Shown here one piece after another: positions 540-46,992 of a stretch of 64,000 bases of DNA. A program made the translations under genes and the position numbers. Location: contig NC_083234.1 of the NCBI RefSeq assembly GCF_032191835.1, forward strand, positions 78,864,001 to 78,928,000. The letters run 5' to 3'. This DNA comes from Heteronotia binoei. Its lineage: Eukaryota. The notes beneath the pieces were generated by a model. The model had not been told where the DNA came from and did not search any database. It worked only from the letters and a program-made list of their open reading frames with translations. Each line of letters starts with the position of its first letter. Within the stretch, counting starts at the first letter, position 1.

Positions 540-1560
540 GCATTCATGACACCCACGGGACAATTTGAGTATCTAGTGATGCCATTTGGGTTGCAAGGGG
601 TGCTGGGAGTGTTCATGAACTTTATCAATGAGGTGTTGAGAGAATATTTGTTCAAGGGGGTGGTGGTGTACCTGGATGATATAATTATCTATTCACAAGA
701 CCTCAAATCGCATGTGAAATTAGTGAGGGAGGTTCTTAGTACCCTATTGAAGCACAAGCTGTATGCTAAATCGTCAAAGTGTGAATTCCATAAGACTGAA
801 CTAGATTATTTGGGCTTCCGGGTATCAGCACAAGGGCTAGCCATGGACCCAAGTAAGGTTCAAGAGGTACTGGATTGGGCTCCCCCAAGGACACATAGAC
901 AGCTTCAATCATTCCTCGGGTTTGCCAATTTTTACCAAACCTTCATACCGGGGTTCGCCCAAATTATGTTACCCTTCACGGAGTTGCTAAAAACCAGGGG
1001 GAGGGGTCCTGACGCCAAAAAACCAGGGGCGAAACTGAATTGGACACAGAGGTGCCAAGAGGCGTTCACCAAGCTCAAATGACTGTTCACTAGTGAACCC
1101 ATTTTAACACACCCTAATGAGCTGAAGCCCTTCATTGTGCAATGTGACGCCTCCGATGTCGTCGTCGGAGCCATCCTCATGCAAAAAGATGAGGAGGGGA
1201 GACTAAAGCCCTGTGCCTATATTTCTAAAAAATTCTCCCAAGAGCAGAGGAATTGGTCAGTCTGGGATAAGGAGGCTTTTGCTGTGACTTATGCTCTAAA
1301 GACCTGGAGGTCATGGCTAGAAGGCTCTAAGGTTCCATTTGAGATCTGGACCGACCACAAAAATTTGGAGGCGCTCACAGGCGACGTAAACTCAGTAAAA
1401 AGCAGATCCGGTGGGCGGGGTTCTTCTCGAAATTTGACTTTGTGCTGAGGCACATCCCCGGGACGAAAAACTTTTTGGCGGATGCCCTTTCGCGCCTTCC
1501 TTAACATAACAGTCAAAAAGAGGAGGTTGTAGACTCTCTAATCTCTCCCTCTCAAGTAGC
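540..1560 (+). mobile_element. Ty3/Gypsy LTR retrotransposon pol fragment (RT + RNase H), frameshifted
   Basis: ORF 546-1082 has TPTGQFEYLVMPFGL, YLDD and KCEF..LDYLG. ORF 1137-1448 has CDASDVVVGAIL, DKEAFAV and WTDHKNL. Sequence near 1480-1500 reads ADALSRLP in another frame. Confidence 0.92.
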
Positions 1561-3078: not shown

Positions 3079-3671
3079 AAAACCCAGGTGCTGTCAAGAG
3101 GTCCACCCTTTCATACTTCCCTTTCCTCTGTATTCCCCTTCCCTTGTCAACCTGCAAGTCTCAGAGGTGTAGCCATATTGGAAGCAATGGGCTTAGCCTT
3201 TGCATAGATTGCACTGTTCATCTGTTGCACAAAAAAAACAATACCTTAAAGACAAACATATTCAGGAAATAGTTTTCATGGACGAGAGCCCACTTTGTAG
3301 AATGCATGAGATGGATCCCTCCACTAACAGTTACAAGGAAGAATGCTGGAATAAATTTACACTTTCTCCATAACTTCTGCCAATGGATGATCCTTTCATG
3401 TATCTGATAAAGAAGGCACTAGCCCATCGAAGATCATGCTAGACTCAAACAAGAGGCCTGTGTCTCTGGACTGATCTCACCTACTTTGAAAGATGTCTGA
3501 AAAGTGAGATCACTTCATGTAGGGGGCCATGCCATTTTTGCCCTCATAACTACAAGCCTCTTCTGTAATAAATAATGATACTTTATCTCAAATATTATTC
3601 ATTCTGCAAGTCTAGCTATCATTTCACGTTCAAATGTCATTTATTTCTAATTACATTCCTGTCCTTGCGGA

Positions 3672-4348
3672 TTACATAAAATCTGGCCTGCGGTAGTCAT
3701 TAAACCACAAATATTCTGGGGAAAGTAATTTTGTTGGTTTATGGTACAAAAATACTTGTTTAGGTGGCTCTCTTCCTGCCAGACAGCCTCCACACTTTTG
3801 TTTTTGTCAGTTATGATGGCTTTGTGGCACTTCTTGGTGAACTTGTAAACTTCAGCCACAGTTCCTCCAAAGAAGCCTCCAGCATAGTAAAAATCCCCCT
3901 CATCTAGGGGAATGAAAGCTTCAGAGACAGGACGTCGTTCATAGGTGAATATTTCGCGCTCGGAGGGAAAGAAAGCTGGGTGAATTGTGCCAAATACCTC
4001 GCTCAAAATCTCTACTCCAACATGGTCATTAAACTGCATGTCTACATCAACACATACCAGAAACTCAACTTCATGGATAAAGCACTATTGAGAGTAGTGA
4101 CTGATCATCCCCATCCGGCGCATGGAGATTTCCTACCACCTGGGGTAATTTTGGACTTTCAGAGGGACTATCTCCCTTCCAGCTTTGACAGTGATGTTAG
4201 GAACAACTTCAGGCCTATCAGTGAAGACTTCACTCTATGAATACTTCACTCTAAGAATATGACTTCACTCTAAGAATACTTCACTCTATGACCAACCATG
4301 AAATAAGTCTCTGCGGTTTCTAGAAACTTCTGGCAGAAGACGACATAC
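3672..4348 (-). pseudogene. ABO-like GT6 glycosyltransferase catalytic (last) exon, pseudogenised
   Basis: Acceptor tcttctag|G at 4349/4348. Conceptual translation: [93 protein letters not shown](fs)[15 protein letters not shown]. Stops at 4133-4135 and 4085-4087, a 1-bp loss in the A-run at 3748-3752, and a tandem insertion at 4227-4291. Lies at the position syntenic with mammalian ABO. Confidence 0.9.
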
Positions 4349-4354
4349 CTAGAA

Positions 4355-6070
4355 GACACAAGAAGACTTTTATGGACTATAAATACAAAAGGAAACTGTC
4401 CAGACTTAAGACAGAATTTTGAGTAATAAATGAAGCAAATTTACACATTTTTGTTCAGACAAGAGATCAGAAATTATCGGACACCATTAGTGACTGACAT
4501 TGATCTGAGGGAGAAAGTGTCCATTGTGCATGATTCCTTTCTGTAATGTTGCTCCAAGAAGTCAGTAATGTTGTTCCAAAATGCCAAGATACAATAAATA
4601 AATTAACAGTTCTAAATTCATCATCAGTTGTAACTGATGAAAACACTAGGAGGGGAGGGGGATAATGATTAGAATGACCTCTCCTGTCCTGAGATCTCTT
4701 GCCTTGAAAATCCCACAGAGTCACCAGACCAGCAGAAGTCCATCTGCTTAGAATTTTGACTGGAATTTGTTGTTTTCAGCTAAAGATATCAGCTCAGCAT
4801 TTGCAACCTTTTATGATAAATTATTTTGCTCTAACAAACCTGATCTAACAGATATCAGAATGCATTTGTCTTCCAATGATTATGTCAAACATATTTCTTC
4901 TGCTCATAGGAATCTAATGGATGCTCCTTTTTCAATGAGGGAACTTCAGTTCACTATTAAAAATTTAAAAAATAATAAATCCCCAGAGATAGATGGCCTC
5001 CCTGCTGAGTTGTATAAGACCTTCAGTACGGTATTGTTAGAACCTCTCGTATGTATCTGCAACCATGTTTTCCATTCTGGTATCTTACCAGCATCACAGA
5101 AGGAGTCTTCAATAACTGTTATTCCAAAACAGAAGATATGACTGATCCAGCTTCCTATAGGCCAATTGCGCTACATAATAGCGATGCTAAAATCTTCACG
5201 TCTTTATCAGCTAACAGACTGAAGTGTATAATTACAGATTATATATTTCCAGATCAGACAGGATTTATGCCAGGAAGACAGATGACGGATAACATTCGAC
5301 GTACTATAGATATTATATGAACATATGAAGCTGCCTTCTACTGAATCAGACCCTTGGTCCATCAAAGTCAGTATTGTCTTCTCAGACTGGCAGCGGCTCT
5401 CCAGGGTCTCAAGCTGAGACTTTTCACACCTATTTGCCTGGACCCTTTTTTGGAGATTCCAGGGATAGAACCTGGGACCTTCTGCTTCCCAAGCAGATGC
5501 TCTACCACTGAGCCACCGTCTCTCCCCATTATACTTTCAGAGAGCTTGGGAAGAAGATCTTAATAGAAATATTCACCCTACCTCATGGCAAAAAATCTGG
5601 AACTCTCCTACAAACTCTTCTTCAATTTTCAAAATTAAAATGCAATTCTTTAAGATTTTGACACGCTGGTATTTTCATCCTAGAAAACTTCATCAGATCA
5701 ATCTGTGACTCAGCCCACGATTCTGGAAGAATTGTGGTCTTGTTGGCACATATTTTCACTGCTGGTGGGAGTGTCCCTTTAGTCAACATTTTTGGTTGGA
5801 TGTTTTGCAACAAATCTCTTTAATAACTTCACAAATACTGCCTCTCTCTCCTAAACTTCTTTTAGATTTATGGGATGAGTCAACTGCAAATGTTTATCAT
5901 AAGGATTTAATTCATATTCTTTTAGCTACTGCATGTCTTACTATTGCATCGTCTTGGAAATCCTCCTCACCCCCAACGAGGCTGGAGTGGTTTGACAAAA
6001 TTTGGGACCAATTTGTCATGCAGAAGATCACAACAGTCATGGATCATGCTAACTCTGATTCCAATGACCC
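4355..6070 (+). mobile_element. L1 LINE ORF2 fragments (RT N-terminal part and C-terminal Cys-rich part), internally deleted
   Basis: KSPEIDGLPAELYK, ITVIPK, DPASYRPIAL, DQTGFMPGRQMTDNIRR; later H-x-WW-x-C region and IASSWKSSSPPT. The 5' boundary is approximate. Confidence 0.82.
5318..5527 (-). mobile_element. tRNA-derived SINE with ATATGTTC-type tail, inserted in L1
   Basis: Minus strand shows GGTGGCTCAGTGGTAGAGC (A box) and GGTTCTATCC (B box). ATTATA direct repeat at 5312-5317 and 5528-5533. Relatives at about 41795-42240, 52950-53050 and 59065-59470. Confidence 0.75.
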
Positions 6071-6629
6071 CCATGACACTGGAATCAATCAGTGTACTGG
6101 AGTAAGTCTGCATAGGAACTGAGCTAACACAATCTCCTTTTCCCTTTGTCTCCCCCTCTGCTTTCTCCCACTAAATCTAAGATTGGGCATCCTGAGTTAA
6201 TATGGTGCAATTGACGTGTTAACATGGTCTGATAAGGAACAAAAATAGAAAAATACAAGGAAGGATTTCCCCTTCCCAGCTCTTTGCTATAAATACCAGG
6301 CACATTTTGGGATATAAAGACGAGGTCTGATCCTTGCTTGCATGCTTTTATATGCTCAAGATGAATGTTGCCTACCGATAAAACACTAGTAAAAGTTTCA
6401 TAACTGAATAAGAAACACCTGAGTCTTCCACATATAGTTAATGTGCTCGATCTTACACACTCTAGCAGGAACTCATGATGCAGCCAAGGTGAAGTAGCCC
6501 CTGTGCTTTTGACTCTCAAAAGTTCATATTGTGAAAATCTGGTTGGTCTCTAAGGCCCTCTTATTGGACTCAAATCTAGCTTTTGTGCCTCTCCTGTCCT
6601 TACATTTTTGCTTGCCCAACACATTGTAC

Positions 6630-6633
<4 letters not shown>

Positions 6634-6686
<53 letters not shown>
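6634..6686. repeat. (TA)n microsatellite followed by (TTTA)n
   Basis: Read directly from the sequence. Confidence 0.98.
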
Positions 6687-6689
<3 letters not shown>

Positions 6690-6690
<1 letters not shown>

Positions 6691-6973
6691 TTATTTATTT
6701 ATATCCCGCCCTCCACTCTAAATCTCAGAGTGGCTCACAATTTCTACCTTTCTCCCCCACAACAGACACCCTGTGAAGTAAGTGGGGCTGAGAGAGATCT
6801 CCCAGAAGCTGCCCTTTCAAGGACAGCCATGTGAGACGTATGGCTGACCCAAGGCCATTCCAGCAGCTGCAAGTGGAGGAGTGGAGAATCAAAGAACAGG
6901 GTGTCTGTTGTGGGGGAGAAAGGTAGAAATTGTGAGCCACTCTGAGATTTAGAGTGGAGGGCAGGATATAAAT
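6690..6973 (-). mobile_element. Squam3/MIR-like SINE (5'-truncated) with an inverted copy of its own 3' end
   Basis: Matches the SINE family at 12484, 31066 and 38780. 6697-6774 is the reverse complement of 6896-6973. Confidence 0.8.
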
Positions 6974-7601
6974 CCAATCATATCACATTTCCAAATTAGA
7001 CTATAATGACTGCTCAAAATAGCATTTTGCCAATCGTTTTTTTGTACACAGCTGCACTGATCTGAAATGAAAAACAAAACAGCATTTGAGATTATGGTGA
7101 CTCTGAAATAAACAGTACTGCTGCATTAAGTAAAACATCTCTTCCATGTCTGCTTTCATGTGGAGAAATCTAACTCAATAGCTGCATAGACTCTATGAGT
7201 ATCACACTGAGTGCATGGCATGGGTTTCACTTCATTGTCCAAAGATGGGCCATTCTGAAACTGAGAAGTTGTTGGATGATCGGATGTAGGTATCCCCAGA
7301 GTGTCTTTGTGCCATCTTGTACTGTACTTGCATGGTAAAGCTTCTATCACTGATTTGTAGACTGAGTGGAAGCCCCGTCAGAATCTGATTCAGGCTGCAT
7401 TTAGTTTTATTACTATTGCTGTCTTAATCATCTGCCTCTCCTCCATTATGACTTGTATTTGTCTACGGGAGCTTTGACTCTTGAAAGCTCACACTCCAAA
7501 AATCTTGCTCTCTAAGGCGCTACTGGCTGTTCTGGCTGATCTACTGCAGACCAACACAGCTGCCCTCCAGAATACGTCTTTTCATGTGGCTGCAGACCAA
7601 C

Positions 7602-9041
7602 TGTAATGGATTTTTGGTTCTCTATGAAAATCTGGTCAAGCAGGCCTGGGCGAAGACACCCTGACTAGGCCGCTTGGCTGAATAAACATTCTCTCACAAG
7701 AGATAATTGGTAAACGGCCTTCAAAACAAACGATCTGCTCCTGGAAGGAGCTTGGCACCATCCCTAATGGGCTTCTTCATTGGCGAATTCCATTCAGCTG
7801 AGCAGATATCTTGAACCCTGGGAATCAAGGCGACTGGTCGGCAGCATGTAATCTTGGTTCCTTGGTAACGAGAGAGAATGGTTACATCATCTCCTGGATT
7901 ATGATTGGCTCATTTCTATAAGACACCTGTGTTTTTGCCTAAGACTTAGCTGTTGAACGACTGGCAAGTTATCATGTCAGTGACTAAAGCAGCTCGCTGT
8001 TGTTCCTGAGGGCTCTGGCCTTGTTTTGTTGGAGAGAACACTGACTTAACATCCTTTGGTAACTATCTGCTTTGCAAGCATTAGCTATTCTGGATAAGTA
8101 TGGTTTTCTTGTTTTGGACCCCCTTCACTGTCATGTCTGTTTTAAATATTTTTGCATGTTAAATAAAACATTTATGGTACGAACTTGGTGTGCTTTTTGC
8201 CTCCATAGCCTTAAAAGCTAAGTTCAGAAGCCTTGGGCTGCTCAACTAGGGTTGCCAATCCCCAGGTGGGGGCAGGGGATCCCCTGGTTTGGAGACCCTC
8301 CCCCCGCTTCAGGGTCATCAGAAAGCGGGGGGAGGGGAGGGAAATGTCTGCTGGGAACTCTATTATTCCCTGTGGAGATTTATTCCCATAGAAAATCATG
8401 GAGAATTGATCTGCGGGTATCTGGGGCTCTAGGGGGGGGGGCTGTTGTTTGGAGTAGAGGCACCAAACTTTCAGTATCGCATCTAGTGCCTCTCCCCAAA
8501 ATACCCCCCAAGTTTCAAAACGATTGGACCAGGGGGTCCAATTCTATGAGCCCCAAAAGAAGGTGCCCCTATCCTTCCTTATTTCCTAAGGAAGGAAGGA
8601 ATTGAAAAGGTGTGCCGTCCCTTTAAATGTGATGGCCAGAATTCCCTTTGGAGTTCAATTATGCTTGTCCCAGCCTTGATCTTGGCTCCACCTTTAATGT
8701 CTCCTGGCTCCACCCCCAAAGTCTCCTGGCTCCACCCCCAAATTCCCCAGATATTTTTTGAATTGGACTTGGCAACCCTATGCTCAACCCATGGTTAATG
8801 TTTCGTTTGGAAACTCCGAACTGCAAGCCCACCTTGCAGGCTTGACTTTCTGGAGTAATTCCCAGGAAGGCTCAAAGATTTGAGCTTTTTATTCTGGAGC
8901 TCTTGGGATAGTCAAAAGGTCTGGCGGCAGCCTAGTGTATTAGCCTGGAGAGAGGGTGTAGGAGTTTGGTAATGCATTTGTCCCTGTGTTTAAAATGGGT
9001 CCCTCTTTTTCCTGGGCTTGGGAGAAGAGGAATCCATGACA
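7602..9041 (+). mobile_element. Solo LTR with 5-bp TSD CCAAC, interrupted by a hAT MITE
   Basis: Starts TGTAATGGATT and ends AATCCATGACA. CCAAC at 7597-7601 and 9042-9046. AATAAA near 8161. Strand inferred from the poly(A) signal. Confidence 0.85.
8247..8780 (+). mobile_element. hAT-type MITE (TAGGGTTGCCAA termini)
   Basis: TIRs TAGGGTTGCCAA / TTGGCAACCCTA. Perfect 8-bp TSD TGCTCAAC at 8239-8246 and 8781-8788. Confidence 0.92.
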
Positions 9042-11194: not shown

Positions 11195-11896
11195 CTCTTA
11201 TAGCCACCTTCAAGAGGGGTTTAGATAAAAATATGGAGCAGAGGTCCATCAGTGGCTATTAGCCACAGTGTGTGTGTATATATAAATTTTTTTGCCACTG
11301 TGTGACACAGAGTGTTGGACTGGATGGGCCATTGGCCTGATCCAACATGGCTTCTCTTACGTTCTTCTGTGACACAGAGTGTTGGACTGGATGGGCCATT
11401 GGCCTGATCCAACATGGCTTCTCTTACATTCTTCTGTGACACAGAGTGTTGGACTGGATGGGCCATTGGCCTGATCCAATATGGCTTCTCTTATGTTCTT
11501 CTGTGACACAGAGTGTTGGACTGGATGGGCCATTGGCCTGATCCAACAGGGCTTCTCTTATGTGACACAGAGTGTTGGACTGGATGGGCCATTGGCCTGA
11601 TCCAACAGGGCTTCTCTTATGTGACACAGAGTGTTGGACTGGATGGGCCATTGGCCTGATCCAACAGGGCTTCTCTTATGTTCTTATGTGACACAGAGTG
11701 TTGGACTGGATGGGCCACTGGCCTGATCCAACAGGGCTTCTCTTATGTTCTTATGTGACACAGAGTGTTGGACTGGAGGGGCCATTGGCCTGATCCAACA
11801 GGGCTTCTCTTATGTTCTTATGTGACACATGTGACACAGAGTGTTGGACTGGAGGGGCCATTGGCCTGATCCAACATGGCTTCTCTTATGTTCTTA
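11195..11896 (+). mobile_element. CR1-type LINE 3' end whose terminal unit is reiterated about 9 times
   Basis: ORF2 end (FKRGLDKNMEQRSISGY-like), then 59-67 bp units TGTGACACAGAGTGTTGGACTGG...CTTCTCTTATGTTCTT starting at 11301, 11368, 11435, 11502, 11561, 11620, 11687, 11754 and 11830. Confidence 0.88.
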
Positions 11897-16982: not shown

Positions 16983-17663
16983 TCATTTGGAGCTAGCTTT
17001 CGCCAGATCCTCAGGCAAGATACGGCCCTTCTTGCGGGCCTTGCTTTTCTTCCGCTCGATTTTGGCCACCTTCTTCTTCTGAATGTTCTTGCGGCGCTTC
17101 TCCTGGCGTTGCTGCATCTTCTCCACCACTTGCTCAGTCCGCTTTCCCCACTGCTTCTGGCGCTGGGCCTTGCGCTGCTCTTTCCGCTTGAGGGCCTTTT
17201 TCAGCCGGTTCTCGTCATCGTGAATCTTGACGCCTTCGGCCTTGTAGAGGACATTGGTCCATCTCATCTTGGTCTCCAGCTGTCGGGCCTTCTTCTCATC
17301 CTTGTCCTTCAGGTCTTCCAGCTTGTTCTTCCGAATCTCCAGCCGACTCAATAGCTGCTTGTAATTCTTCCCTGTCAGAGGGGTGAGGTTGCCTTTCAAA
17401 GCCTTCCTCTTCTCTTTCCTCTTCTCTGCTTTGCTCGGCTGCTCGACATGCACTTCTACCTTGTTGAAGGCTATGCTGGACTTGTCATCGTTCTTGGGGG
17501 CCGTGTGCTCCACAGTGGCTTCTGTTGACACCTCTCCTGCTTCCTTCTTCTCAGCTTTTTTCTTCATCCTTAATTCTTTCCTCCGGCGTTTCTTTCTCTC
17601 CTTCTCGTATTTCCTTCGTTGCTGCTTCTTCAGGGCAGTTGGCGACAGCTCTTTGGGCCTTCC
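16983..17663 (-). CDS. SURF6: SURF6 last coding exon (681 nt, GRPKELSPTAL...GRILPEDLAKASSK*)
   Basis: Acceptor ttaacag|GGA. Contains SURF6 domain motifs KGNLTPLTGKNYKQLL, KWTN-like RWTNVLYKAEGVKI and RKKGRILP. Phase matches the previous exon. Confidence 0.96.
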   Translation of the reverse strand, partial: GRPKELSPTALKKQQRRKYEKERKKRRRKELRMKKKAEKKEAGEVSTEATVEHTAPKNDDKSSIAFNKVEVHVEQPSKAEKRKEKRKALKGNLTPLTGKNYKQLLSRLEIRKNKLEDLKDKDEKKARQLETKMRWTNVLYKAEGVKIHDDENRLKKALKRKEQRKAQRQKQWGKRTEQVVEKMQQRQEKRRKNIQKKKVAKIERKKSKARKKGRILPEDLAKASSK

Positions 17664-18365
17664 CTGTTAAGAAACAGCAACTTGAAAAGGCAGCAGAATC
17701 GCTTATGGGACCTGGACAAGATTTAGACATTAAGAGGGAGGGGGAAACCATGTCCTTTGCACTTGAAAAAAAATTGCAAATGATACTAAACTCTGCAATG
17801 TGGATAAACTACACAAATGTACTTAATCCATATGTGTTGACTTATCTGCATAATTTATTCTGCCTGTCCTTGTAATTAAGAGGAAAACGGAGGCAAACAG
17901 CACCACCTCACTGGATATGTTGACTGTTGAGGTACAAGCCTATCTTTGCAGCCATTCCTTCTAGAAATGTGATGTTGTGAGAAAATGGGGAGGGGGATAA
18001 CCAAGATCATCAAGAAATTGAATTCTGCATATTGGGAGGGCGGGGAGGGTGTATTTTACACACAAAATATACACACTCCTGAATATGGAAACAGTTACAC
18101 TCTGAACTAAAATAACTCGCTTCACATCTTTCACTCAGAATTCAGGTAACATTGCAACAAAAACCTTTTTTAGTTTATCTCAGTTGCAAAATCTATCCTT
18201 GCATGGGGTTTGGAATGTTTTAGTTAGGATCCAAATAGAAGACAGAAGGCAGCGAAGTGGTGCAGACTTGCCAGGACAAAGGCTGGTGGGGAGGGGGACA
18301 GAGCACCCATAAGACCCTTCACCATCCCTTGGAAACTATTATTTTAACAAGGGTGCTGACCATAC

Positions 18366-19692: not shown

Positions 19693-21890
19693 CTCATAGA
19701 ATCACAGAGTTGAAAGGGACCTCCAGAGTCATCTGGTCCAACCCCCTGCACAAGGCAGGAAATTCACAAACACCTCCCCCTAAATTCACAGGATCCTCAT
19801 TGCTGTCAGATGGCCACCTAGCCTATGTTGAAAATCCTCCAAGGAAGGAGAGCCCACCACCTCCCAAGGAAGCCTGTTCCACTGAGGAATCGCTCTAATG
19901 GTCAAGTTCTTCCTAATGTTGAGCCAGAAACTCTTTTGATTTAATTTCAACCCATTGGTTCTGGTCCTACCTTCCGGGGCCACAGAAAACAATTCCTCAC
20001 CATCCTCTAGATGACAGCCCTTCAAGGACTAGAACTTGGTGATCATATCACCTCTCAGGCTAAACATCCACAGCTCCTTCAACCATTACTCATAGGACTC
20101 AGTCTCCAGACCCCTCACCATCTTTGTTGCCCTCCTCTAGACCTGTTCCAGCTTGTCTATATCCTTCTTAAAATGTGGTGCCCAAAACTGAACACAATAC
20201 TTCAGGTGAGGTCTTACCAGAGCAGAGCAAAGCGATACCATCACATCAAATGATCTGGACACTATACTTCTGTTGATACATCCCAAAACTGCATTTGCCT
20301 TTTTAGCCACCGCATCACACTGTTGACTCATGTTCAGCGTATGATTCACTAAAACCCCTAGATCCTTTCTGCACATACTACTACTAAGACAAGTCTCCCG
20401 CATTCTATAACCATGCACTGGATTTTTCCTACCTAAATGCAGAACTTGACATTTATCCCTGTTAAAATTCATTTTATTGATTTTAGCCCAGTTTTCCAGC
20501 CTGTCAAGGTCATCCTGTTTCTGTCTTCTTCTGTGTTTGCAATCCTTCTCAATTTAGTATCATCTGCAAATTTAATAAGCATTTCCTCTATTCCTTCATC
20601 CAAATCATTACTAAAGATGTTGAACAAACCAGGTCCCAGGACAGATCCTTGAGGCAGTCCACTTGTCACTCCTCTCCAAGAGGATGAGGAACCATTCACA
20701 AGCACTCTTTGGGTGCGATCTGTCAACCAGTTACAGATCCACCTAATGGTAACAGGATCCAAACCACATTTTACCAACTTGTCAACAAGGATAGTATGTG
20801 GAACCTTATCAAAAGCCTTACTGAAATCAAGATAAACGATGTCTACAGCATTCCCCCGATCCAGCATGGTAGTCACTTTCTCAAAAAAAGAGAACAGGTT
20901 AGTCTGATATGACTTGTTCTTGAGAAACCCATGCTGGCTCTTAGTAATCACAGCTGTCCTTTCTAAATGTTCCAGGCCCAACTGTTTGATTTGTTCTAAA
21001 ACTTTTCCAGATATAGATGTCAACCTGACGGGTCAGTAGTTACCCAGATCCTCTTTTTTCCCCTTCTTGAAGATGGGAACAACATTCACCTGCCTCCAGT
21101 CTTCCGGCACCTCTCCTGTTCTCCAAGAATTCTTAAAAATAATAGCCGGAAGCTCAGAAATTACATCCGCAAGCTCTTTTAGAACCCTTGGATGAAATTC
21201 ATCTGGCCCTGAGGACTTAGTTTCATGTAAAGAAACTAGGTGTTTATGTACTACCCCTATGCTGATCCTAGGTTGGAACTTCATACCCTCCTTATATATT
21301 CTGTTTTTGCCATGTTGGCAACCATTCCCCTCAGAAGAAAAGACTGAGGAAAAGTAGGAATTGAGTAGTTCCGCCCTCTCTTCATTACCTGTTACAATTT
21401 CACTTTCTTGCCCTCGCAATGAGCCTATCATGTCCTTGCTCTTTTTCATACTCTGAACATAAGAACCATTTTTTGTTGTTTTTAGCATCTTTTTCTCTAC
21501 AAGCACTGGTGATTTGTTTATATTCATCCTTGGTTATAAGGCCCTCCTCCTCACAAGTATATACCTCCTTCACATATACTGCTACGTCTCCGCCATTTCT
21601 CATTTGCCTGTCCCTTTTAAATAAGTTGTACCCCTAAATCCTAATATTCCAGTTGTGTCATCCCACCAAGTTTCAGTAAGGCCTATTACGTCATAGTCCC
21701 CTTCCTTTATTAGGACTTCCAGTTCCTCCTGTTCGTTTCCCATACTCTGTGCATTAGTGTAGAGACATCGGAATCCACGTTTTATGCATCCTGAGGGTTT
21801 AGTTTCTGTACAAGTCTGCAAGTTAACATTACTTAGCGTATGCACCACTCTCTGCAAATCTTTAGTGTTCTTATCCCCAGTTTCTGGCAT
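19693..21890 (-). mobile_element. CR1 LINE ORF2 (EN start to 3' tail) with internal deletions, in SURF6 intron
   Basis: CLYTNAQSMGN..DVIGLTETWWD (EN); [24 protein letters not shown] and FADD (RT); QWNRLP C-terminus; TGATTCTATG tail. Confidence 0.95.
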
Positions 21891-32664: not shown

Positions 32665-32863
32665 TCAGGCAAGCTCCGTGGGGGCCGCTCCGTGTCCGTT
32701 GACGTGAGGGTGCAAGGGGGTGGGCCCCTGCGGGGCTGGGATGCTCTGCTCCATCATGGCAGCCGCCAGAGGCAGGGGGAGGCCTTCAGGGGAGCCCCCG
32801 GCAGGTTCTTGTCTCCAGTAGGCCTCGCACAGCGGAAGGTCGTTGCCATCACACAGGCTGTAG
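32665..32863 (-). CDS. MED22: MED22 terminal exon of long isoform (SYSLCDGNDLPLCEAYW...APTELA*); 203 aa total
   Basis: Phase-2 join AG|C. The motif matches the recalled MED22 long C-terminus SLCEANDLPLCEAY. An alternative acceptor 6 nt downstream (32857) is possible. Confidence 0.88.
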
Positions 32864-35800
32864 CTTCCCAGCAGAAGAGAGGCAGGAAGGAGACGGAAGC
32901 AGAAAGGAGCAGCAGAGGCGGAGAAAGAGGGAGAGAAGCAAGAGAGGCAAGCGTTACGAAAATGGCCGACTGCTGTTGGATGCAACAATAAGGTTCTCCC
33001 ACCCCTTGGACATGGCGATGGGGCAGCTTCAAATATTTCTCTTTGGGCTGACTGGGTATGAGTGACAAGTTTGTATGTTTTTTGTCTAGGAAAGGTAAGA
33101 AATCTGAAAAGGCTTTGTCATAGGGGAAGAATCAGGAATCCACAGAACTGAACAAAAATAATAAAATATGCTAAAGCACAGAGGGCAGGGTCTTCGGCGA
33201 TTATAGCGGAGATCTTGAAGAAAAACCTACTTGTTGAGGAACTGATTTTCCTGGACGGCAGATCTGAGAAGGGGGTGGGCCCCGGAAAGGCCAATGGGAA
33301 GGACGACTGCCACCTCTCTCATCCCCGCATATCCCTCAAGGGGCTGGAATTGGCCTCCCTTTGCTGACCCCCTCCTAATTCATCAGGAGCTAAAGACTCA
33401 TTTTCAAGCTTTCCCATGGGCAGATGTTTCAAGGAAGGTGAGAATGATGTGGCTGTAGCAAACACCCATACAGATCTCATAGCAAGAAGAGAAGAGAGTG
33501 TACATGCTGTACTGGCACACTGGGCAATATCTGCACATGTCATGAACACACAGGGTCAAGGTGGCACATGGCCTCCCTTCTGCATGGACCCGGGAGTTTT
33601 CCAAGAGCAGACTGAAGGGCTGCCACCACCTCTCGCTCCTTGTCCCCCCTCCTGCTGCAGCAGAACACCCCCCCCCTCCCGCTGAAGTACACAGGAGATG
33701 CAAAAGGAAGCAGAGGAGACGGCAGAAGTCTGAGAAAGCAGGCTGTGCATGGAAAGGAGCTGCTGGCCCAAGAGCTGGGCTGCTCTTCAGGAAAAACAAA
33801 AGAAAGCCAGTCCAGGACAGCCATGGTGGGTTTGTTCACGGCTGTTTTATTTATAATAATGATAAAAATAATATTACGCAGATATTTTTTGTGGGACATA
33901 TTTTAGGTATAAATAGATGCTACACATATATTTTAGCTATATGTATGCGCATAGAGAGAGTATAAGAGCATGACTCAGTGCTTTACAGTATATTTTAAAC
34001 TTCCTCAACCTGTCAGCATCAGCAGCCCACTGCTCCGGTCACCATGAAGGGCCATGCAGAAAACAACAAATTTCCCCTGAAACCCGAAGACTGAGAAGTG
34101 GCGCCAGACCTGGGGACTGGAGGCAGCTGTCTCAGCCCAGCAGGTGGGCCTGGGAGGATGGCAACACTCAGCATCTGACAGCCAAAAGGAGCCACAGCCC
34201 ATAACGTAGATCACAGGGCAGCACAAAGCCTCTGGCATCCCCAGAAGCCTGGCCTGGTCAGTGGAGAAGGATGCATTTCCCCATCCTCTGACTGAAGGGA
34301 AGCTGTGCTGGAGACCACGGGGGCCAGACAGACTTCCACCCAGCTCCCAGGCTTGGCCCTAACAGGGTAAGAATTTGGTTTCTTCGGTGCATGACACAAA
34401 AAGTCACTTTAAACCTGAAAGCAGAAGGGTGCAAGGAGGCTGAACAGGAGGACCAGCGGAGAACTTAGGCAGCTCTGCTGGAAGCAGGAAGGGTTTATGG
34501 CCTGAAGAACGCTGCAAAACAGGCTCAGTGGATCAGGCCAAAACACCTCCTAGTCCAGGAATCTGTCTCACAGAGCAGCCAGCCCTGGTGAAGTTCACAA
34601 ATTGGGCCTGAAGGGAGCAGCCGCCCTCTGTTTCTCCTCATCCTGTGGCTTTCATGCTGCCTCCAAGCACGAGCCCTTGAACAGACCTCAGCTGCCATGA
34701 AGACGTCGTTTTTAAAACAGGAGCCATCACATCACATGACTGAGTTCCGTACAGAAGGGGCTCGCGCATCACGCAAACCGCCTCCTTTTTCAAGTCCTAA
34801 ACTGACCGACAGGCTCACCAGGTGTCATGCAAGGAGGCAAAAACGCTATCAGAACAATGCTGTAAAGATTAACACTTGAGCAATCGATTGCTAAGGTGGA
34901 ACTGGGTCTACAGGAAATTGTAATATTGGAGAAGAGGCAGGAGAGGGATCACAAGGGCCTCCCAGTGCTCACGCTACCCAATGCTCCGTGCTCCAAGCAT
35001 CATTCATAGCTTACAAAGGGGGGGGGGAGGGGGAGGACCCAACCCTATGCTGCCGAAGTGGTTTAAAAAACAACAACATACAAGCCAGATTATGGACATC
35101 ACTAAGAAGTTCAATTTTATCTCAGAACAGCTAAAAAAAATACCCTCTTTGGAAAACCCCACCACCACCACACACGGAGAAGAGTCTACAGAAAGCTTAC
35201 AGAGGCAAAAGGAGCCAGCCAGCCAGCTTCTCCTGTCTGTGACAGCTGTTTCCACCATGCTGGTCTTTGGCAACAAGGAAAAGCTGACCAGATGTTTCTG
35301 AGTTAAAAGAGCTGATTCCCGTTTCAGGCACTTTTTAATTCCACACACGCCTAGCATATGGATAGGGTAGCTTGTAAAACCAAGAAAACAGCTCTGAAGG
35401 CAAGTAACTTCTGTTGATGCACCTGCAAGGCGGACGCTGGCAACTTTGCCAACTTGTCGCTCTTTTAAAGCATCTTAAGCTCCAGTTCCTCACCGCATTC
35501 AAAAAGGTTCTTTCTTTTCACATTTTGCATAGAACAAAAAACACCCATGCTACAATGCAGCACCAAAATGCAGGAAAGCTGTTCACCAGAATCAAGCCCT
35601 CTGGGGAGCTGGGCAGCATTGGTAGAATGATTATAAAGGCTTCTTGAGATTCTATATCATATATTTCTTTTCTGGACTTGGAATGAAAACAAGTATATTC
35701 CCCACCCACCCCCAAACAAGAGAGAGCAGATAACATCTGGGGCAGGAGCAATATACCACCAGGTCGTGATGTTAGGAACTCTTGTCCGCCCATCCAATCT

Positions 35801-43666: not shown

Positions 43667-43744
43667 CAAGCAAATGATGCAAATGAATATTTGCTATCTG
43701 AGTGATGTTGCTGACAAGATATCCACCAAGATCGCTGATGCTTG
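43667..43744 (+). ncRNA. SNORD24: Box C/D snoRNA U24 (SNORD24), RPL7A intron 2
   Basis: C box ATGATG at 43674; guide TGAATATTTGCTA + D' CTGA; guide CCACCAAGATC + D CTGA at 43735; terminal stem CAAGCA/TGCTTG. Confidence 0.93.
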
Positions 43745-44562: not shown

Positions 44563-44639
44563 TGTGCAAATGATGCTAGCAAATATTTGCTATCTGAGCT
44601 TTTTTGATGACTCCCAACCACCAAGATCGCTGATGCACA
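44563..44639 (+). ncRNA. SNORD24: Second U24 (SNORD24) copy, RPL7A intron 3
   Basis: C box ATGATG at 44570; AATATTTGCTA + CTGA; ACCACCAAGATC + CTGA at 44630; stem TGTGCA/TGCACA. Confidence 0.92.
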
Positions 44640-44964: not shown

Positions 44965-45040
44965 TTGCTGTGATGCATGAATTTCTTCACCTGAACTGCA
45001 GACTGAAGAGCAAAAACACGAGCTTTTTAACACTGAGCTT
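44965..45040 (+). ncRNA. SNORD36: Box C/D snoRNA U36 (SNORD36), RPL7A intron 4
   Basis: C box GTGATG at 44970; TGAATTTCTTCAC + D' CTGA; ACGAGCTTTTTAAC + D CTGA at 45033; flanking stem. Confidence 0.9.
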
Positions 45041-45220
45041 TAGCAGGTTGTTTCTGTCCTGTTTTTATTGTTCCCAGCAAGAGTTTGATGGCTGGGTGTT
45101 GTGCATTAATATCTCTCGGATTTAGGGGCCAGCTTGCTGTACCTTCCTATGGAAAGTGAACTCTGAATTTTTGCTTGAAAAAAGATGTGGTCCCCTCTGC
45201 TAAATTGATTCATTTTGCAG

Positions 45221-45300
45221 GTGTGAATACAGTCACTACCCTGGTGGAGAACAAGAAAGCCCAGCTGGTGGTGATCGCACATGATGTTGACCCCATTGAG
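45221..45300 (+). CDS. RPL7A: RPL7A exon 5 (80 nt)
   Basis: ttgcag|[26 protein letters not shown]|gtaaga. Confidence 0.98.
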
Positions 45301-45612
45301 GTAAGAGGCTTGCTCGGAGTTTGGAGCCCTTTGCCTCAAGCGTTCAGAACTTTGCTACTGGATAAGAGCAGCTGAGCAGTGTTCTGTAATGAAAAATACA
45401 TATTGCCATATATACATGGCATGTTTCTCACAACAGAAAATAGAGAGGCTTTCCCATCTTCCCTGCTATATAACCCTTAGAACAGTGGCTTCCTGAATGG
45501 TTCTTTGCAGAAGTATTGAGTGGGTGTGTGCAGGATTGGTTGACTACTGGGTTATGTCCACAGCAAAAATTAAAAGCAGTTACCAGTGGAGGGATTCTTA
45601 CATGCTATAATT

Positions 45613-46911: not shown

Positions 46912-46992
46912 ATTGCAATGATGTTTGAATTTCTTCACCTGAAAAATACCCATGAAGAGCAAAATGATACGAGCTTTTTAACCCTGAGCAGT
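46912..46992 (+). ncRNA. SNORD36: Box C/D snoRNA U36 (SNORD36), RPL7A intron 5
   Basis: C box ATGATG at 46918; TTGAATTTCTTCAC + D' CTGA; TACGAGCTTTTTAAC + D CTGA at 46984; flanking stem. Confidence 0.92.

Follow-up and report, generated by a model that had tools for sequence, protein, structure and literature searches.

Dead partial copies of the histo-blood-group gene ABO in multi-copy arrays are already known in several vertebrates. Partial non-processed ABO pseudogenes of ferret, panda, horse, rat, frog and turtle (PMC5377540) lack N-terminal exons and show frame aberrations; they lie near the surfeit genes in linkage with full ABO genes, and have been interpreted in terms of birth-and-death evolution. 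Mammals also carry ABO retropseudogenes, which are intronless cDNA copies (PMC5377540). The published vertebrate consensus for gene order and orientation is RPL7A, MED22>, SURF6>, ABO> (PMC5377540, Table 1). The reptiles represented in two ABO synteny papers are the Chinese alligator and green sea turtle (2017 survey, PMC5571153) and the softshell turtle (2014 table, PMC5377540), with no squamate among them, and ABO has been lost in birds and some reptiles (PMC5571153). Our full-text literature search found no paper on squamate ABO.

We analysed 64,000 nucleotides of chromosome CM063336.1 of the gecko Heteronotia binoei (GCA_032191835.1), a stretch called the window here; genomic position is 78,864,000 plus the window coordinate. 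Its minus strand holds a solitary ABO-type terminal exon with about 400 bp of intron and the 3′ flank, which we read, at a probability of roughly 0.9, as a non-processed pseudogene fragment forming the end member of a tandem array. Like the partial pseudogenes above, it is without N-terminal exons, has a broken frame, is linked to further ABO-like genes near the surfeit genes and is best understood through birth and death. It differs from them in its gecko host, in being the copy nearest SURF6 and in that its neutral evolution has been measured. With the mammalian retropseudogenes it has in common that it is dead ABO-derived sequence; unlike them, it keeps an intron and acceptor and lies in an array. 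The gecko array is a modest addition to what is known. Taken alone the fragment matters little, dead partial copies being a known by-product of birth-and-death evolution. It is useful as a marker, since it shows that a squamate, too, has kept the place of ABO next to SURF6.

The catalytic exon and its lesions

The decayed terminal (catalytic) exon of an ABO-type GT6 glycosyltransferase spans 3637-4348 on the minus strand, from the first exon base to a TGA, as delimited by alignments and by matches to Pfam PF03414 (Glyco_transf_6). The pieces between the breaks all match this profile at colinear positions: 4350-4273 corresponds to profile positions 86-110 (E 3.6e-8), 4234-4136 to 112-142 (E 8.5e-4), 4084-3749 to 161-271 (E 3.6e-55) and 3755-3675 to 271-293 (E 6.7e-6). 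In a three-frame translation of 4420-3560 (minus strand), GT6-like peptide is spread over all three frames. The largest piece, the 112 aa encoded by 4084-3749, scores 171 bits against the solved structures of the human ABO A/B transferases, with ~65% identity over 110 residues, and only 113-120 bits against those of bovine alpha-1,3-galactosyltransferase (GGTA1).

Besides the family profile, the exon has both of the motifs that mark GT6 members. The DVD (DXD) metal/UDP-binding motif is kept at 4040-4048 (minus strand), as seen in the translation and the structure match, and EESHLN, from the (D/E)ESHLN acid/base region of the family, is kept at 3758-3775. By alignment, Ala-Gly-Gly in YYAGGFFGG (3875-3883) takes the place of human ABO residues 266-268. 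The splice acceptor, TTCTAG|G, is intact, its AG occupying 4350-4349 and the first exon base being 4348, and the codon split at the exon start has the same phase as at the last intron of the aligned gecko ABO-like genes. Human and other mammalian ABO (structures 1LZ0 and 3SX7) resemble the fragment in the identity given above, in DVD, YY-x-G-G-FFGG and ESHLN, in the position and phase of the intron before the last exon, and in place and strand with respect to SURF6 and MED22. Unlike human ABO, the fragment is broken and consists of a single exon, and it has AGG as do the A-type genes of pig, cow, dog and Xenopus, where primates have LGG.

The original prediction, made from the sequence of the window, was of a dead GT6 catalytic exon, and both the PF03414 matches and the disabling lesions bear this out. 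It located the DVD motif exactly and named EESHLN correctly. Its upstream exon edge, 4348, is likewise exact, being the first base after the acceptor AG; its other edge, 3672, is only a stop met in a shifted frame. Homologous coding sequence continues to 3637, since a 19-bp deletion moves it into the third frame, and ends at a TGA (3639-3637) at the same site where the Gekko japonicus gene stops.

Lesions were called against five, and then nine, stop-free terminal exons of gecko ABO-like genes. Reading with the minus strand, the first is a frameshifting 44-bp tandem insertion with in-frame stops at 4231-4274, absent from all nine comparator exons; it is housed in a repeat array of 16/19-nt units that Tandem Repeats Finder (TRF) places at 4222-4291 with 4.2 copies. 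Two nonsense codons follow, both TAG. The one at 4133-4135 stands at the Q of human RWQDVSM, and all intact gecko comparators have CAG or CAA there; the one at 4085-4087 is CAG in all of them. A 1-bp deletion in a T run at 3748-3749 shifts the frame (all nine comparators have one base more), and a frameshifting 19-bp deletion in the C-terminal coding part, at 3684-3685, emerges from the alignment to the nine comparators and from the frames. There is no N anywhere in the window. Every lesion of the original prediction (two TAG codons, a 1-bp frameshift and a tandem insertion) was recovered in the alignment to the nine gecko exons; the list was incomplete in that it overlooked the 19-bp deletion.

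Surroundings, intron remnant and missing exons

Surfeit-cluster genes were identified in the window. An RPL7A exon lies on the plus strand at 45160-45372 (Pfam PF01248, L7Ae), and Rfam matches place two copies of SNORD24 (43669-43742 and 44565-44637) and two of SNORD36 (44965-45041 and 46913-46992) in RPL7A introns on the same strand. Residence of SNORD24 and SNORD36 within RPL7A introns is the host-gene arrangement known from mammals. The 3′ part of MED22, a called gene with PF06179, lies at 32665-33987 on the minus strand, upstream of SURF6. The last exon of SURF6 (16986-17666, minus; Pfam PF04935, E 2.5e-38; 100% identical to H. binoei XP_060107646) is 12.6 kb upstream of the GT6 exon and on its strand. 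The H. binoei SURF6 locus record (L005, with MED22 at 1-1323) corresponds to window 33987-6983 at 100% over 27,005 bp. The order MED22-SURF6-GT6 is that of the published consensus (PMC5377540), so the predicted ABO-syntenic place and strand beside SURF6 hold.

Two other geckos were examined downstream of SURF6. The 10 kb of flank available in Gekko japonicus and Eublepharis has no GT6 exon, and the G. japonicus flank is collinear with window 17600-11142. A 67-bp minisatellite (nine copies, 92% match) occupies window 11301-11895 in the region between SURF6 and the GT6 exon, and its unit also occurs downstream of SURF6 in G. japonicus (L009, ~5800-8800).

Sequence homologous to the last intron precedes the exon. 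This remnant, with the TTCTAG acceptor, spans 4349-4753 (minus strand) in blastn matches to the introns of the Heteronotia copies; the matches extend to 4697-4753 and no further, so that ~400 bp of intron is kept, and the flank is 87-93% identical. Directly beyond the end of the homology, a LINE-like open frame runs on the opposite strand (4767-5141). On the other side, 3′ flank alignable by blastn to a Gekko kuhli ABO-like gene covers 3176-3636 (minus strand), and window 3176-4633 as a whole aligns to the Gekko kuhli locus (L003, 17190-15689) at 77%.

No upstream exon accompanies this intron. Searches by tblastn with 14 and then ~290 GT6 proteins found no upstream GT6 exon in the 12.6 kb up to SURF6 or elsewhere in the window. 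The N-terminal portions of full-length gecko proteins (tblastn) and the sequence upstream of the last exon in five gecko genes (blastn) likewise gave no match in the window better than chance. A protein match just past the acceptor, at 4351-4410, was rejected as not significant. Intact gecko genes have a conserved 45-codon penultimate exon 1-2.5 kb upstream of the last exon (4.6 kb upstream in one Gekko kuhli gene model) and further small exons beyond it. The fragment is thus missing the exons for the cytoplasmic tail, membrane anchor and stem as well as the conserved 45-codon penultimate exon; the complete reading frame with membrane anchor and stem that characterizes a working type II enzyme is absent from it.

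A processed retropseudogene was considered and rejected: the fragment is not a retrocopy because intron sequence precedes the exon, with its acceptor, and it sits in an array of its relatives. A kept intron and splice site, disabling lesions and relaxed constraint, all of which the fragment shows, are together the features of a non-processed (duplicated or unitary) pseudogene.

Other repeat-like sequences lie nearby. LINE-type reverse-transcriptase fragments occur at 546-1082 (plus) and 20472-21023 (minus), both with Pfam RVT_1 matches, and at 4767-5317 (plus); the last of these abuts the end of the ABO-intron homology. A tRNA-Pro(GGG)-like sequence at 5451-5523 (minus; Rfam 48.7 bits, also called by ARAGORN) is ~1.1 kb upstream of the pseudo-exon and adjoins LINE-like sequence. 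Instead of a tRNA gene, this could be the start of a SINE derived from a tRNA.

Subfamily, array and history

Subfamily placement used a careful IQ-TREE analysis of 62 rows and a quick tree of 92 GT6 rows, which agree. The broken exon was entered read-through, with X at each break and no residues supplied there. The careful tree pairs the fragment (97/90) with a clade (98/93) made up of five Heteronotia ABO-like proteins, and a Gekko kuhli gene (P0245) joins next (98/97). These nest successively in clades of geckos (100/99), squamates (99/90) and sauropsids (96/85), and finally in an ABO clade (99/96) of 34 rows that takes in the pig A transferase, other mammalian ABO and the ABO-like proteins of amphibians and lungfish; GBGT1 (100/100) and GGTA1 (99/100) form separate clades. 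The exon had been called ABO-like, a GT6 phylogeny had been proposed as a check, and clustering with GBGT1 or GLT6D1 had been named beforehand as the result that would overturn the call; the exon falls inside the ABO clade, well away from GBGT1 and GGTA1. The sampled rows did not include GLT6D1, and affinity to it is untenable given that the fragment is 83-86% identical to Heteronotia and other gecko ABO-like proteins.

The same chromosome has at least five stop-free ABO-like terminal exons, found by tblastn at ~78.819, 78.782, 78.729, 78.679 and 78.669 Mb in loci L001, L006 and L007, which fall within 78.60-78.83 Mb. Three of these are on the strand of the fragment and the other two form an inverted pair, with two genes of L006 pointing towards each other. 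Together with a second decayed fragment, they lie 45-265 kb from the pseudo-exon. The nearest annotated ABO-like gene is ~45 kb from the fragment; its locus (L007), the closest to the window that was covered, ends ~32 kb short of the window start. Accession look-up gave three H. binoei ABO-like gene models on this chromosome, XP_060107466 (a gene model shared with isoforms XP_060107467-469), XP_060106633 and XP_060107309, and a fourth was seen solely through gene calling. For the array copies in one locus (L001), upstream exons can be detected. Intactness of these other copies means open terminal exons, upstream-exon matches and annotated proteins, some of the models being without a membrane-anchor exon; the annotated isoform XP_060107466 combines one copy's penultimate exon with a terminal exon that belongs to another copy, 53 kb away. 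The second decayed terminal exon is at the far end of the array, at ~78,603,167-78,603,792 (L006:1165-1790). It is 5′-truncated, with homology from about residue 27, has a 1-bp deletion, and forms a long branch (0.12) in the exon tree, where it groups with the young copies of Heteronotia.

The fragment is the SURF6-proximal dead member of a tandem ABO-like array on CM063336.1. It resembles the ABO-like genes of Heteronotia (the three models and isoforms above), Gekko, Eublepharis and Paroedura in its AGG triplet, intron and 3′ flank; unlike these genes, with their open terminal exons and upstream exons, it has five disabling lesions and an omega near 1. The original prediction had offered two interpretations of the dead exon, lineage-specific loss of ABO or birth and death of histo-blood-group genes, and had suggested a look for paralogues outside the window. 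That look turned up at least five stop-free ABO-like terminal exons on the same chromosome, and with them the suggestion of loss falls away: H. binoei has not lost ABO, because the array has stop-free copies and upstream exons are detectable for those of L001. The array of open and decayed copies speaks for the other interpretation. The family of histo-blood-group genes is turning over by birth and death here and has not been lost.

In exon DNA the fragment is 91-92% identical to two Heteronotia copies that are 95% identical to each other, and the exon DNA tree puts it just outside the young Heteronotia copies (77/83) on an end branch of 0.068. In the nine-sequence analysis the changes private to the fragment, relative both to the young Heteronotia copies and to the other geckos, number 8 synonymous and 28 non-synonymous (dS 0.059, dN 0.053, omega 0.89); this supersedes a first estimate of 3 synonymous to 16 non-synonymous based on five comparators only. 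The same count for the intact gecko copies gives an omega of 0-0.51 in six and 0.76 in one (12 changes). Judged by these substitutions, the fragment has drifted neutrally for essentially the whole of its separate history, and two or three nonsense changes with three indels would be about what that much neutral change is expected to bring.

Shared states show how the fragment relates to the other copies. It keeps ancestral states found in other gecko species, namely V in MVGH, S in MISHY, N in RNK, and the 3′ flank, and it is without derived states shared by the five young Heteronotia copies; this pattern gives no sign of recent exchange with those copies in either direction. The five younger (or homogenised) Heteronotia copies belong to a lineage that first separated from Gekko kuhli P0245; the fragment branched off this lineage later and has been decaying ever since. 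The working copies could look younger than they are if gene conversion has acted among them. The fragment cannot make an enzyme, because its upstream exons are missing, it has two nonsense codons and three frameshifting indels, and its private branch is neutral.

Alternative readings, origin and specificity

That the lesions are errors of assembly or consensus in an exon that is really intact is hardly credible. One of them, the 1-bp deletion, does fall in a T homopolymer, a classic site of such errors, and the 130-aa product of the frameshifted ORF has no exact match in public assemblies, the look-up having found no independent contig. Against this stand five lesions that are independent of one another and differ in kind (two C>T nonsense changes and indels of +44, -1 and -19 bp), the 28 non-synonymous private changes, many of them at sites invariant in other geckos and with an omega of ~0.9, and the missing upstream exons. 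A null, 'O-like' allele of a gene that functions in other individuals of the species has a precedent, in that segregating nonsense and frameshift nulls are common in ABO genes, for example SNPs in dog and deletions in pig (PMC5377540). Such an allele would have to accommodate ~6% neutral divergence on a private branch with an omega near 1, as well as the absence of the 5′ exons, in whose stead LINE-like sequence appears from 4754; this decay exceeds that of a segregating allele, and we consider the explanation very improbable.

We give equally little credence to the idea that the fragment has been kept for some use, as a 'reservoir' donor in gene conversion or recombination or as a non-coding transcript. 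Its close linkage to the array and its shared orientation suit a donor, and Yamamoto et al. (2014, PMC5377540) have proposed a reservoir role for ABO genes that are partial. The substitution pattern is neutral, however, and the ancestral states of the fragment are found in none of the five young copies, just as their derived states are missing from the fragment. A non-processed pseudogene fragment at the end of the array remains our reading of the locus.

How this pseudogene fragment came to be a lone exon admits two accounts: it is either the founding SURF6-adjacent gene minus its 5′ half or a duplicate that was partial from the start. Only tentatively, and against the odds as we see them, might the fragment be what is left of the ABO gene that founded the tetrapod family, still in its original position beside SURF6, the founder having died in Heteronotia and its daughters having taken over. 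Were that so, the fragment, with the second one at the far end, would mark a gecko ABO array turning over from its edges, and squamate ABO arrays, with their AGG, CGG, CGC, IGA and MGS triplets, would offer a new system for multigenic A/B polymorphism outside mammals.

The specificity triplet points to the kind of enzyme that preceded the fragment. The triplets used for comparison in the original prediction, GGA for GBGT1 and HAA for GGTA1/A3GALT2, agree with the literature (PMC5377540; PMC6351642) and with our GT6 alignment, and its reading of Ala-Gly-Gly as A-type is likewise sound, AGG at 3883-3875 meaning A in the published code (AGG, LGG). Placed in the backbone of the human A transferase, AGG confers strong A (GalNAc) activity and no B activity, and weak Forssman-synthase activity too; it is frequent in non-primate A transferases (PMC5377540; PMC6351642). 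The fragment and all four Heteronotia proteins examined have AGG, as do the majority of ABO-like proteins from geckos, turtles, amphibians and lungfish. The ancestor of the fragment was most likely an A-type (GalNAc) transferase, to go by the AGG that it shares with almost all of its relatives in geckos.

ABO has not disappeared from geckos; they have an expanded tandem array, mostly of A-type AGG copies, with other triplets in other geckos. It is this array, rather than the fragment, that a glycobiologist might follow up. Other triplets, namely IGA, MGS, CGC and CGG, occur in ABO-like paralogues of Euleptes (P0201), Gekko kuhli (P0206) and Eublepharis (P0197 and P0199). By the published code IGA and MGS are B-type, IGA being known from rabbit and MGS from bacterial genes and titi monkeys. 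Going by these residues, some geckos may have both A-type and B-type genes.
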